64,000 nt of DNA from Iphione sp. A-MEVVRFRX5 (Eukaryota): assembly GCA_976226885.1 (NCBI GenBank), contig OZ320313.1:52204001-52268000 (forward strand). The letters run 5' to 3'. The notes under the pieces are model-generated. The model did not search any database. It worked only from the letters and a program-made list of their open reading frames with translations, and was not told the DNA's origin. Each line of letters begins with the position of its first letter. Position 1 is the first letter of the stretch. The position numbers and the translations under genes are program-made. This document shows positions 31,761 to 37,600 of the stretch, one piece after another.

Positions 31761-32308
31761 TAAAGGAAACTAATTTTAGAGCGTCCACAATGAAATGAGT
31801 ACGATCCTGGTAAACGATAGAAAATATCAAGACACTGAAATGTACTGACATCCTTATCGTTATTGTAAGTACTGCAGGAAACGCTAATCTCCTGACATTC
31901 TTCTGAACTTACTCTTAAAAATCAGACCACGACGATTTTTTAATCTCTTGAAACATCAGACCAAAAGACAAAACATCTTAGCAACTTTGTCTCGGTACAT
32001 GTGTGTAAAAATGGAGGTCTGACTACGCCTCAGCACAAAAAGAAATCTAAATCCTGTCAAATATATGTACTGTTAAGCAATATTTTCATTAATACATGTA
32101 CAGGAAAAACTCGCTTTGAGACCATCTCACTTTCCGACCAAATCCACTATTACGACCATTTTGGGTCGGAACGGAATTATTTTTAGTACATTTCTATAAT
32201 GGTAGAATCTTACTTTGCGACCATATCACTTTCCGACCAAATTCGCCATACGACCATTCATCTTTGGGTCGTTTTCAATATAATTTATTATCACTTTGTG
32301 ACCATCCC

Positions 32309-32965
32309 CGACGACTTTGATGGTCTCTCACCTTGGAGGGGTAGCCCGAGAGTGGTCGCGGGATGTCAAGGCGACGTCTCTGATGTTCCTCACACCGTGG
32401 AGGGGTTGGCCGGCAGTGGTCGCGGGATGTCGAGGCGTAAATTTCGACGACTTTGATGGTCTCTCACCCTGGAGGGGTGAGGCCGAGAGTGGTCGCGGGA
32501 TGTCGAGGCGTCAACTTTGACGACTTTGATGGTCTCTCACCCTGGAGGGGTGAGGCCGAGAGTGGTCGCGGGCGTCAACGGCGACGTCTCTGATGGTCTT
32601 CGCACCTTGGAGGGGTAGCCCGAGAGTGGTCGCGGGATGTCAAGGCGACGTCTCTGATGTTCCTCACACCGTGGAGGGGTTGGCCGGCAGTGGTCGCGGG
32701 ATGTCGAGGCGACGTCTCTGATGTTCCTCACACCGTGGAGGGGTTGGCCGGCAGTGGTCGCGGGATGTCGAGGCGTCAATTTCGACGACTTTGATGGTCT
32801 CTCACACCGTGGAGGGGTTGGCTGGAGTGGTCGAGAGCGTCAACGGGGACGTCTTTGATGGTCTCACACGTTGGAGGGGTGAGGCCGGCAGTGGTCGAGA
32901 GCGTCAACGGGGACGTCTTTGATGGTCTCTCACCTTGGAGAGGGTCGGCCGGCAGTGGTCGAGGG
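32309..32965. repeat. GC/CpG-rich minisatellite inside the Tigger element, 10 units of 62-74 bp
   Basis: TGGAG(G/A)GG anchors at about 32334, 32398, 32470, 32543, 32608, 32672, 32736, 32810, 32872 and 32936. Each unit contains GTGGTCG plus GATGGTCT or GATGTTCC. Confidence 0.95.
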
Positions 32966-33093
32966 TGGGCGACCTGGCCCCCTACCTCTACCATACATAA
33001 GGAGGTCCAGACAGCCCCACAAATCACTCTTCTCCTGGATTCCAGTGAGGACACACATCTCCAGTTCCAGCTCCTGATCCAGCTCCAGCCAAG

Positions 33094-34635
33094 ATGCCAA
33101 GAAATGAACTCTCCCTTGGTGACAAGGTCAAGCTCATCAAGGTCTCCACTGGAAGAAGCCAGAGAAGCCTTGCTGAAGAATTCAAAGTGGGCAAGACTCA
33201 AGTCCAGGGTATCCTCAAGAGAAAGAGGGAGATCATGGAGCAGTATGAGAAAACACCAGACCCCTCAGTCAAGAGGCACCACTACTCCACTGACCTCTCT
33301 GACCTGGATGAAGCCTGCTACAAGTGGTTCTGCAGGATGAGGTCAATGAACATCCCCATCTCAGGGCCTGCCATCCAGAAGAAGGCCCTGACCCTGAGCA
33401 AGGAGCTCAACCTGCCAGAGTTCAAGGCCTCAGTGGGGTGGCTCCAACGCTTCAAGACCAGACACTCAATTGGGGCCTTGAAGGTGTGTGGAGAGAGTGG
33501 AGCAGTGCAGGACTCCACTGTTGAGGACTGGCTGCAACATCTGCCTGAGAAGCTGGAAGGCTACAGCCCTGCCAACATCTACAACATGGATGAGACAGGG
33601 CTGTTCTACAGGATCATGCCTGATAAGACCCTTGCCACCAAGGGATCTTCAGCCACTGGTGTCAAGAAGTCCAAGGAGAGAATTACAGTGTCCCTCTGTG
33701 TAAACATGGAGGGAGACTTTGAAAAGACACTAGTGATTGGCAAGGCAGCCAAACCAAGATGCTTCAAGCACATAGACATATCATCCCTCCCAGTGACTTG
33801 GAAATCCAACACCAAGGCTTGGATGACAGCATCAGTGTTTGAAGAGTGGCTGCACACCTTCAACAATAAGATGAAGAGGCAAGGGAGGCATGTGCTGCTA
33901 CTTCTGGATAATGCCCCATCACACCCACATGGTCTCAAGTTGAGCCATGTGAAGATGGTCTTCCTTCCTCCACAGGCCACTTCAGTACTGCAGCCACTGG
34001 ATCAAGGAATTATCCAGAACATCAAGATGCACTACAAGACTAAGTTGTTGGAGTACTTCCTCAACAAGGCTGAGAGCATTCAGGGAGATGGTCCTATTGA
34101 CATCCAGTCCCTGATGAAGTCAGTGGATCTCCACAGAGCTATCCACTGGCTGAGAGACTCCATCAACCAGGTGAAGCCAGAGACAGTCCGCAAGTGCTTC
34201 ATCAAGGCTGGCCTGAAGGTCCCAGACCAGCCCTGCCAAATGGAGGAAGAGGAGGATGAAGATGATCTTCCTCTTGCAGAGCTGGTGAGGAGGACACAAA
34301 CACTGCTCCCTGTGGCTGACCCATGTCTGCCTGATGAGTATTGTGGGCTGGATGATGCTCTTCCAGCTCACAACCAGGATGTTGATGATGCTGATCTTCT
34401 GCCAAGGAAAGATGAGGAGGAAGAAGAGGAGGAGGAAGAAGATACACCAGTGTCTACTTCACTCTCCCATGCCAAGGCCATGGAAATGATGGAACAATTG
34501 AGGGATCACTTCCTCCACCATGGGGCAAACACCAGTCTGGAGGACTTGATGGCCACCATGAATTCCTTTGGGAAACACATCCAACAGGCAAAGAAGATTC
34601 AACCAACTATTGACTCTTTTTTCAAGCCAAAATAG
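33094..34635 (+). CDS. pogo/Tigger transposase (CENP-B-type HTH domains plus DDE_1 domain, DD30D), 513 aa
   Basis: N-terminal LSLGDKVKLIK..SQRSLAEEFKVGKTQVQGILK and WF...PISGPAIQKKA...FKASVGWLQRFKTRH (CENP-B/Tc5 HTH). Catalytic motifs NMDETGLF, LLLLDNAPSH and LQPLDQGII, with 30 residues between D2 and D3 by manual count. Acidic tail and C-terminal QPTIDSFF. No stops or frameshifts. Confidence 0.97.
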   Translation: MPRNELSLGDKVKLIKVSTGRSQRSLAEEFKVGKTQVQGILKRKREIMEQYEKTPDPSVKRHHYSTDLSDLDEACYKWFCRMRSMNIPISGPAIQKKALTLSKELNLPEFKASVGWLQRFKTRHSIGALKVCGESGAVQDSTVEDWLQHLPEKLEGYSPANIYNMDETGLFYRIMPDKTLATKGSSATGVKKSKERITVSLCVNMEGDFEKTLVIGKAAKPRCFKHIDISSLPVTWKSNTKAWMTASVFEEWLHTFNNKMKRQGRHVLLLLDNAPSHPHGLKLSHVKMVFLPPQATSVLQPLDQGIIQNIKMHYKTKLLEYFLNKAESIQGDGPIDIQSLMKSVDLHRAIHWLRDSINQVKPETVRKCFIKAGLKVPDQPCQMEEEEDEDDLPLAELVRRTQTLLPVADPCLPDEYCGLDDALPAHNQDVDDADLLPRKDEEEEEEEEEDTPVSTSLSHAKAMEMMEQLRDHFLHHGANTSLEDLMATMNSFGKHIQQAKKIQPTIDSFFKPK

Positions 34636-37600
34636 CAATTTTCATTGATTTCAGTGTATATAAATGTACCTTGTATTTATTTACATGCATTGATCTAATG
34701 TATATACATTTACTTGAATAAATAATTATTTGTCTATTGAAGTATTAATATGGATTATTATTGATTTGTAGAGAGAGAGAGAGAAAGGGATATGATTTCA
34801 AGCCCAGACCCCCATACAAAATCACTTTGAGACCATATTCGCTATTAAGACCATTTTGGGCCGGCCCAAGTGGTGGTCGCAAAGTGAGTTTCTCCTGTAT
34901 ATTCATGGATGTCTATAGTTTCACTAAGTTTGGGAGCAAAAGTTTGGCGCGTGGACTTCCTCCAGACGAAAAGCAGACGCATAAAAACATTAGGACCTCG
35001 TCTTACTAGGTGCTAGTTGGGCGGGGTGTTTTTTAGAGCAAGAAAAGAATTAAATTTCTCATGCGTTTCTCAATAAGCATCTCAGGTTTCGTGTTGCCAA
35101 CTGATGAATGCGCCGTCACTTTGTAATTGATGAGCTCCAATGTGTGTGGAGGCAATGGGGTCTGAGTGTCTAGAGAAAAGGCTGGTCCCTTGAGGACGTC
35201 TTTCTGGTATCCTTTGATGCGATTTATTTCATTGGGTTTCCATCGACGCTAAGAGCACTAACTGTAAGATTCTCAACGGGAAAAGAATATCGTCTATCAC
35301 AGAACATAATAGCATCCTCTATCTGATGAGAATTACGTACTGAAATGAAACAAATTGTACGGGATAACCCCGCACGTTTACTTCTTTCCTTGATCCAAAA
35401 GAATTGAAAGTCTGTTTACGAATGTACATACATGTACACACTGTGGAACGACTTCCATCTGTTCTGCTTCAATCATAACCAATAACGTAAGCATTAATAA
35501 AACTGTGCGAGCTAAACTGAGTGTCTGCATGACTGTGTGCGTTTGATGACTGCTCTACGGCTTACGCATGACAGAGGCCTCCTGATTTCATCACCTTGGC
35601 TCTCTATGTTAACAGTCTGAGTCCAGTTGAATAGCTGGAGACACGTGACACATTGTAAAAAGGCGTTCGTCTGAAGGCCACAGAAGAGTCGACTTTTGTT
35701 GACTGTTGGAGGCCAAGATCCAAGGCAATAATCGCCCTTAATGAGATACCGATATGGCCCAGATAAGGAGGACTAGGTGGGCAGTCGGACCCACTGAGCT
35801 CCTCACTTAGGGCGCGTTCTTTGATGTCAGGCGGGCGCCGAATAATACGCCGTCAACCTATTCCAGTGGAAGATCCACCCTCTCCGAAGCTTACAACTGA
35901 GCGACGCGGCCGATAAAAAAAAGGATAAAAAAAGCAAAGATCTCTTTGTATCTTTCCTGCCGACGTTAACGACTTTGACACGGAGCCGCCGTCATTCCCC
36001 TATCACCTTGCAGGGCTTTCTCGTTGAGTTCGCCCCAAGTGCTCCCGGGTAATAATGACAAAGTGCTGAGATGGCAAACGCCAACTTCATTATTTCTGTT
36101 TGAATTTCGTCACATCGTGCAAATGAAAGAATTTTTGTTTGACTGTTGCTTGTTCATCAGTGGTAGCAGCCCGGAACAAGAAGACATAGAGGCGCGATAT
36201 GGTCAAACACATGTGTTTCTAAACACCTAGTACAAGCTTCGTCTTCCACATCATTGAGTTGATGAAATGAGTGGTTGACGATTGTAAAGAGGCCTTCACC
36301 TCCTACGTTAGGAATGAACATCTAATCAGAAAAGTGTCACACATTCAATTTACGAGAAGAAACTGTACTACACTTACAGTTGGATCACTTGTTCTAATTT
36401 TTATAAATTCAAAATTCAACTTTGGTTGCTAGACACCACTTGGCATTTATGGCCAGCAACGACGCACAGCGGCTACCTGTGTCCGCCTAATAATAGATCG
36501 AGATTGTCACACAAAGCAGGCCGGCTGGCACTTTTGGCGTGGCCTACTACCGAACGTCGACGATGAATTACCATCGGCGCCGGAGCAGCATCCGGCCGCG
36601 CCCTTCCAGCTACTTCCCGTCTGCGGCCTTTCCTGTTCCGGAGGTCAAGGACGCGACTGAAATCACATGATCCTGTTGGTGAAGGGTGGACAGGTAGGAA
36701 GGCGGTGGTGCAGAGGGGGGTGCGCGGCGCAGGAGGTTGACGTGCCAATTTTGCCGGACCATCCTCTGCCCGCATGAATCTGACATTTGCGTATGCTACT
36801 CATCCCCTTTTGATCCACTACATGCTTTGCTAGCATAAACCCCGTGCTTTATTATGGCTGTTTTATTTCGTGTAGGCTAACAACAGCTGGATCAATTTCA
36901 CATCATTTTTTTAGTTTCGCCCGTGGGAAAATGCGTTTCATTTTTTGTGTGCCAAATATACTTAACAAGTCTAGGGCGGCACGCAATTTTTCATCACATT
37001 CATAAGGACCCTTCTGCCGGCCGTAATCATCCTAGATAGAAATGTAGTTTAGAGACTAGGAGGGGGGATGGCAAATGACGTATTATCGCCATGTGTTGGA
37101 AATAATCCGCTACTTTCTACACTATACCGGCTTCTCAGCCGGGCCGTAACCTTTGTGGTGTGGGTAAATGCGCTAGGGACGCCCCAGCCTCACAGGGAGG
37201 AAGGGCGGGGACTCTAAGTGCCCGCAGCCCTAGTGATTAAACTCTCCACTAATGGCCCGATCCCATGTCAGCTCTAATTTAATATGACAGCCGCTCTTAC
37301 ATAATGTCCAAGATAAGACGTGTGCGGCAAGCGAGAAAAAAAACCCATCCATACAACCATCGACGGCGGTTCTAATGACTAGTCAGCACGGAAAATGATA
37401 ATGAATCATGGCTAAATAGGAGGAGAGGTACAGAGGGGGCTGGGTAGGAAAGGAGACGGCTCCCCTGATAATGACGAGCGATGAAACAACATACATAGGA
37501 AGAAGGCGAAATCATCTAGAGAGGAGGTCAGATTGGAAAAGTCGTTCATTCTTTAGAATAAAAACAGTATCTGTGGAGGTAAAAAAGTAAATAACTTGGA

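Follow-up and report, generated by a model that had tools for sequence, protein, structure and literature searches.

A copy-number-variable minisatellite with the end-site core of its own Tigger transposon upstream of the transposase gene in Iphione sp.

Our analysis of a 64,000-nucleotide stretch of the genome of Iphione sp. A-MEVVRFRX5 (contig OZ320313.1, positions 52,204,001 to 52,268,000; referred to here as the window) raised the question of why a DNA transposon should carry, between its left end and its own gene, a minisatellite in which every unit contains a core also found at the element ends. A first-pass annotation, made from the letters of the window, had suggested that this minisatellite was built from the core motif of the terminal inverted repeat (TIR) of the element and could act as an array of transposase sites. 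The best explanation of the 865 bp concerned (positions 32101-32965) is that they constitute the 5′ non-coding control region of a Tigger/pogo transposon, which is organized as follows (window coordinates).

32099-32100, unstranded: left TA target-site duplication, read directly
32101-32124, plus strand: left TIR, 24 bp, with a 21/24 match to the right repeat and the first GACCA site at its inner end
32101-32308, plus strand: left end with seven direct sites in two 99-bp blocks, family consensus TCACTTTGCGACCA, variant ATTRCGACCA
32309-32965, plus strand: minisatellite array of 10 units of 62-74 bp, delimited by TRF and fixed-anchor cutting, with GTGGTCGC or GTGGTCGA in each unit
32966-33093, plus strand: linker, in which the core promoter and the 5′ leader probably lie
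32996-33002, plus strand: TATA-like CATAAGG within the linker
33024-33030, plus strand: Inr-like TCACTCT within the linker
approximately 33050-33089, plus strand: degenerate 10-bp microsatellite within the linker
33094-34635, plus strand: transposase gene, 513 amino acids, a single long open reading frame with only 2 CpG in 1542 bp
34717-34722, plus strand: putative AATAAA polyadenylation signal, inside the CpG-free zone
34815-34897, unstranded: right end, with direct GACCA at 34831 and 34849 followed by the inverted terminal repeat at 34874-34897
34898-34899, unstranded: right TA target-site duplication, read directly

The element at 32101-34897 is an intact Tigger/pogo transposon. These positions are the true bounds of a complete DNA transposon with TA on either side, and TA likewise occupies both flanks of all 10 complete full-length copies and of 23 short copies. 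Both TIRs begin with CAGG, positions 1-19 of the left one are invariant among 29 copies, and the inner part of the right one reads CACTTTGCGACCAC on the minus strand. The assignment to the pogo/Tigger group, already proposed in the first-pass annotation, was borne out by the domains of the transposase, which comprise CENP-B_N (PF04218, E value of 1e-5), HTH_Tnp_Tc5 (PF03221, E value of 1e-18) and DDE_1 (PF03184, E value of 2e-44, with the full profile covered). The acidic triad, assigned by motif, consists of D166, D272 and D303 within NMDETG, LLDNAPSH and QPLDQG, respectively, and about 30 residues separate the second and third D, as in pogo/Tigger transposases. The element belongs to a young, recently active, multi-copy family, the genes of which are approximately 99.4% identical between full-length copies (99.0-99.5% between different copies). 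The copy in L002 (2484-3855) is a chimera. From the left end through the array and the linker to codon 104 it matches the window copy closely or fully, with no difference in the predicted protein over these 104 codons, while the remaining gene, still open, shows only approximately 80% DNA identity overall. Near 38.64 Mb of C22 (L004, L005, L034, L039 and L065), two copies lie head to head, one apparently inside the gene of the other, and near 52.87 Mb of C13 (L010 and L024), two copies lie in tandem approximately 3 kb apart.

The sites at the element ends provide the reference against which the minisatellite has to be judged. Seven direct sites had been counted in the left end, and GACCA is indeed found there on the plus strand at 32120, 32136, 32154, 32219, 32235, 32252 and 32300; the two further direct sites at the right end (plus-strand GACCA at 34831 and 34849) and the inverted end at 34874 are likewise as annotated. 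The family consensus of the left-end site is two-part, with CACTTT followed by GCGACCA. As subterminal repeats do, the left-end sites duplicate inner sequence of the inverted end and persist across copies: 28-29 of 29 copies have them at the same positions, while the intervening spacers fall into several diverged haplotype blocks, and variable positions amount to 3 of 42 in the left-end cores versus 36 of 109 in the spacers (Fisher p 0.0008). The seven left-end sites are the likely primary transposase-binding cluster. As a separate observation, the left ends of the copies are only 83-99% identical, being mosaics of a few diverged haplotype blocks between the conserved sites, and this mosaicism next to near-identical genes points to recombination between lineages or to a recent sweep of the gene.

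Four related Tigger families of other organisms, whose transposases are 42-52% identical to that of the window element, follow the same plan. The ends of these relatives begin with CAGT; at the left they carry 4-7 direct sites (GACCA, GACCAC or GCGACCAC), and at the right the inverted end is accompanied by two direct sites. In the relative L073 (42% identical transposase), the end contains CTCACTTTGCGACCACC, as does the inner right end of the window element, and the inner 17 bp of this L073 end equal that inner right end (L073:2272-2300 and 4175-4202), so that end recognition is seemingly much better conserved than the overall protein. Given this common plan and the reported binding of end and subterminal repeats by Lemi1 (PMC1636448), the GACCA-type end sites are very probably genuine transposase sites. 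None of the relatives with recognisable ends contains an array, and the distance from the end to the ATG is 205-484 bp in these families versus 993 bp in the window element. Since the end core recurs in relatives that lack the array, it is defined independently of it, and the array constitutes a derived feature of the family of the window element.

Within the array, TRF detected a period of 64 bp with 9.9 copies (32309-32965), and cutting at a fixed anchor yielded 10 units of 62-74 bp, of which units 1-7 contain GTGGTCGC and units 8-10 contain GTGGTCGA. Every unit had been said to carry the core in the orientation opposite to that of the left-end sites; this was upheld by 17 minus-strand GACCA between 32321 and 32960, which are not independent because they all stem from one or two sites of a single unit, and by the lack of any plus-strand GACCA in the array. 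Together with the 7 left-end sites, these also bear out the earlier total of well over 20 GACCA upstream of the open reading frame. The higher-order duplication described before is evident from TRF periods of 201 and 265 and from the identity of 32331-32437 to 32605-32711 (107 bp, 100%). A second site, TGGTCTC, ascribed to most units, is present in 6 of the 10, with TGGTCTT in 1 and the mutated TGTTCC in 3, so that seven units have it intact. Among 238 units, this second site (GATGGTC) represents a G/T dimorphism and is lost in 34%, and every unit contains GCGACCAC on the minus strand within an invariant 12-bp block. Other blocks of the unit, such as TGGAGGGG and CTGATG, are equally invariant in the 238 units, and conservation of the core is not significantly higher than that of the rest of the unit (0 of 8 versus 17 of 65 variable columns, p 0.11). 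A coding repeat was ruled out, as the unit lengths (62-74 bp) do not keep to multiples of three and the array is crossed by open reading frames in mixed frames. The hairpin or cruciform potential of the array is no better than that of shuffled sequences (z +1.1), and none of the known RNA families came near its gathering score.

As regards the claim that the array is built from the TIR core motif of the element itself, the units have the core in common with the end sites and do not match the complete site. The 8-bp core GCGACCAC, common to the array units, the right end and the end sites of the relatives, is found in every unit; the CACTTT half of the site is absent. According to statistics that are partly post hoc, dinucleotide shuffles of one unit produce at least one GACCA with a probability of 0.28, at least two with 0.048, GCGACCA with 0.016 and GCGACCAC with 0.006, and GCGACCAC occurs 9 times in the window versus 0.91 expected, of which the array accounts for 7 and the right end for 1. 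The unit can be aligned to the inner right end, where GGCCGGC is followed by GTGGTCGC (p ~0.02), and its alignment to the left end is not significant in two of three units (p 0.17-0.67), the third giving 0.044. When an 18-bp model of the left-end site was applied, the best score in the unit was −6.6 bits (p 0.5) versus 19-29.5 bits for true sites; the model fails on the units because they lack the CACTTT half, which is invariant in the left-end sites. An in-place inversion of the core, suggested by CTTTGA and TCTCAC flanking it both at the unit start and at the left end, was judged an over-reading, as the end sequence there is itself a near-palindrome.

To follow the array through the family, the 1.18-Gb host genome was searched with the 865-bp stretch as the query, which gave 2418 first-look candidates, and all 40 of the candidates scored contained the array. 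With the left end plus the array as the query, all 29 of the other copies that were retrieved had the array. As the 865-bp query favours array-bearing copies, a second search was performed with only the last 119 bp of the element; it returned 30 loci, comprising 5 full-length and 25 short non-autonomous copies, and each of the 25 short copies retained at least one unit. That the array could be an unrelated insertion, missing from other copies of the family, is contradicted by its presence in all 54 other copies examined, in which the unit number, whose comparison the first-pass annotation had proposed, ranges from 1 to 14. The array lies between the ends and varies in unit number across these 54 copies, as expected of a transposon-borne minisatellite. 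The arrays of ten full-length copies measure 379-720 bp, and short copies of 457-991 bp keep the array as well.

The array is 62% GC, with a CpG observed/expected ratio (o/e) of 1.06 and a GC skew of +0.26 (G-rich coding strand). The CpG o/e is 1.41 in the left end, 0.11 in the linker and 0.02 in the gene (50% GC), the window average being 0.67. Of the 79 CpGs of the element, 74 lie in the 870 bp before position 32971, the last of them at 32970, 2 in the 1869 bp of 32971-34839 and 3 in the right end. The array thus ends at the switch from CpG-rich to almost CpG-free DNA, approximately 30 bp upstream of a conserved TATA-like box. In the 10 full-length copies, an invariant block follows the array and includes the TATA-like CATAAGG and, 30 bp further on, the Inr-like TCACTCT; this arrangement suggests that transcription starts downstream of the array, which adjoins the putative core promoter. 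The presumed transcription unit (32971-34839) is almost CpG-free, and CpG has likewise been purged from the diverged sister gene in L002 (o/e 0.04) but not from the relatives of other organisms (o/e 0.36-1.13). In other copies (L063-L072), a 10-bp microsatellite of 2-5 units, CTCCAGACCT, which once more includes GACC, directly precedes the ATG; it is degenerate in the window copy. In L064 and L067, an alternative 30-bp segment with CCAAT and the E2F-like TTTCCCGCC replaces that of the window copy between the last unit and the TATA-like box.

What is established is the anatomy of the element, the family-wide presence of the array, its copy-number variation, the clade-wide core and where the array lies with respect to CpG boundary and TATA-like box; the following explanation is built on these points. 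The first 208 bp constitute the standard end cluster of the clade, that is, the inverted end and six more direct putative transposase sites, and the next 657 bp are a family-specific minisatellite filling the gap from the end cluster to the likely core promoter. This array probably originated by tandem duplication of a segment with one end-site core (GCGACCAC) and later grew and shrank by slippage or unequal exchange in gap repair. Each unit could then serve as a secondary, lower-affinity site for the N-terminal helix-turn-helix domains of the transposase, providing each element with approximately 10 extra sites in the right-end orientation directly upstream of its own promoter. Transposase bound there would be retained at the array, so that both gene transcription and the pool of unbound transposase would be affected, and the size of the effect would follow the unit number. 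That the units are secondary transposase sites of this kind, keeping transposase close to the promoter and off the ends, is the reading that we favour, albeit tentatively; autoregulation by transposase at the array is plausible.

Ranking close behind, and nearly as good, is the explanation that the minisatellite is a functionless passenger, made and resized by slippage in double-strand-gap repair after excision and tolerated in non-coding DNA, with the core retained by descent or present by chance. We regard this as a real, if doubtful, possibility. It would readily explain why the unit number ranges from 1 to 14 among copies whose genes are 99.4% identical, and it agrees with the higher-order duplications within the array, with a core that is conserved no better than the rest of the unit and with relatives that function without any array. 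The family also contains three other tandem repeats, namely the 10-bp leader microsatellite and two repeats that occur in short copies and not in the full-length element: 4-5 units of a 31-bp AT-rich repeat (e.g., L017, L016 and L036) and 2-3 copies of an 82-bp right subterminal piece, 34745-34827 (e.g., L019, L025 and L028). As the 31-bp array and the 82-bp duplications contain no core, they point to a general slippage habit of the family. Furthermore, several sizes of short copies were found repeatedly at separate loci flanked by TA duplications (five times for 964 bp and twice each for 891 and 731 bp), and the 731-bp variant, found at two such loci, has only 2-4 units; copies with so few units have therefore transposed, and a long array is not needed for movement. 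On the other hand, the exact 8-bp end core in every unit, with its shuffle probability of 0.006, is not what a passenger would be expected to show, and if the transposase does recognise the core, some binding would follow whether it has been selected or not.

The short copies bear on the same alternative. Among 34 of them, at least 10 different internal-deletion junctions were found, and in each case the left breakpoint lies inside the array and part of the array is kept. The left breakpoints are scattered over many different positions within the units, which suits a passenger, and the right ones cluster near 34745-34765, many of them inside a stretch of approximately 20 bp in the 3′ untranslated region, some with TGG microhomology. 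If the array is functionless, its universal presence in short copies would reflect tandem repeats acting as hot spots of aborted repair rather than selection; given that the array makes up only approximately 27% of the internal DNA, the retention of units at at least 10 independent junctions would require a strong hot-spot effect. The pattern of the junctions fits both selection and a repair hot spot.

Alternatively, the units could be sites for host transcription factors, forming a tandem promoter or CpG-island module whose unmethylated, CpG-rich DNA would drive or protect transcription of the transposase gene, with GACCA being incidental. The base composition of the array, its G-rich coding strand, its end approximately 30 bp before the TATA-like box and the near absence of CpG from the 1869 bp that follow are all in line with this idea, as are the CCAAT and TTTCCCGCC motifs found between array and box in some copies. 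It could also account for the invariance in 238 units of blocks unrelated to the end motif (TGGAGGGG and CTGATG), although invariance within a concertedly evolving array is no proof of constraint, and it has a parallel in mouse L1, the promoters of which are tandem monomers with CpG islands (PMC9022269, PMC2894050). We nevertheless consider it a less likely, though serious, rival, as short copies without a gene keep the array even though a promoter is useless there, and the genes of the relatives have 205-484 bp of upstream DNA with no array in it.

The first-pass annotation had also seen in the array a possible route from transposon to satellite. A search for the exact unit pattern gave 1812 matches in the 1.18-Gb genome versus 0 for the reversed control, and the first 100 matches listed cover 47 Mb in clusters of at most 8; as their density equals that of the genome-wide count, there is no room for a large free-standing array. 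Free-standing arrays were thus sought and none was seen, within a search for exact units that diverged arrays would escape. In metagenome contigs, the unit gave 15 single matches and no array, which we took as chance, and the CENP-B box (TTCG N4 A N2 CGGG) has no match in 32101-32965, even with one mismatch. Although some copies have up to 14 units and transposon-borne arrays have given rise to satellites in other animals, such as Tetris (PMC4079207) and DTC84 (PMC3879986), the dispersal of the exact units, the single chance matches in metagenomes and the absent CENP-B box make it highly improbable that this piece of a transposon is on the way to becoming an independent satellite bound by protein, in the manner of alpha satellite and CENP-B.

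Returning to the reading that we favour, namely that the units are secondary transposase sites, its strongest form would make the array a working, copy-number-tunable operator, with transposase on each GCGACCAC, with the unit number setting both self-repression and the soaking up of transposase, and with the thousands of array-bearing short copies forming a genome-wide sink. We consider this form distinctly unlikely. If it were true, the Tc1/mariner/pogo group would have its first case of a self-made minisatellite of binding sites that plays a regulatory role. Should the units merely be bound, the family would offer a natural series of 1-14 units, in autonomous and non-autonomous copies, for studying how surplus sites tune a DNA transposon, a question recently raised by work on piggyBat. 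If they are not bound, the array would be one more transposon-borne minisatellite, of use mainly as a marker of slippage in gap repair. As the family is young, with dozens of open genes that are 99.4% identical, these alternatives are directly testable.

Several known systems share parts of this organization. In the maize element En/Spm, repeated end sites for TnpA extend into the promoter, a GC-rich region comes next, and the promoter is regulated by the element's own protein; En/Spm is, however, a plant element of the CACTA superfamily with a separate binding protein, unlike the Tigger element of the window. The pogo-like Lemi1 of Arabidopsis with its MITE Emigrant belongs to the same superfamily as the window element, and its transposase binds the inverted end and, cooperatively, subterminal repeats (PMC1636448). 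These repeats copy the inner half of the end and are kept in non-autonomous derivatives; Lemi1 lacks a minisatellite, however, and each of its ends has two or three subterminal sites, whereas the window element has seven left-end sites and a one-sided array of 10 units with the core only. Surplus binding sites within tandem repeats have a precedent in Galileo, an element of the Foldback type, in which the repeats hold secondary THAP sites and binding has been demonstrated by EMSA for two repeats (PMC3688188). As in Galileo, the candidate core of the window element lies in element-internal tandem repeats, but Galileo is a member of the P element superfamily with repeats in both of its long inverted ends, whereas the window array is confined to the 5′ side, outside the inverted end and near the promoter.

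Self-limitation by surplus sites has been demonstrated experimentally for piggyBat, in which an internal subterminal transposase site restrains the element's own activity (PMC11707139); this involves a single site in an element of the piggyBac superfamily, compared with many candidate sites in the window element. Short arrays of variable unit number between non-autonomous ends are described for DTC84 of Donax (PMC3879986) and for Tetris (PMC4079207), and the passages considered on DTC84 characterise no autonomous partner and mention no motif shared between unit and end site. The window family differs from DTC84 and Tetris in having an intact autonomous Tigger partner and the end core in its unit, with no derived satellite seen. 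Mouse L1 likewise has a variable number of CpG-rich tandem units just upstream of the coding region, which there affect promoter strength and bind the host protein YY1 (PMC9022269, PMC2894050); L1 is, however, a retrotransposon with a promoter internal to its transcript, whereas the window element is a DNA transposon, the array of which probably precedes the transcription start. Minisatellites borne by transposons, binding repeats in subterminal position and secondary sites within tandem repeats have all been described before, and what is new here is an example of this kind in a Tigger element.
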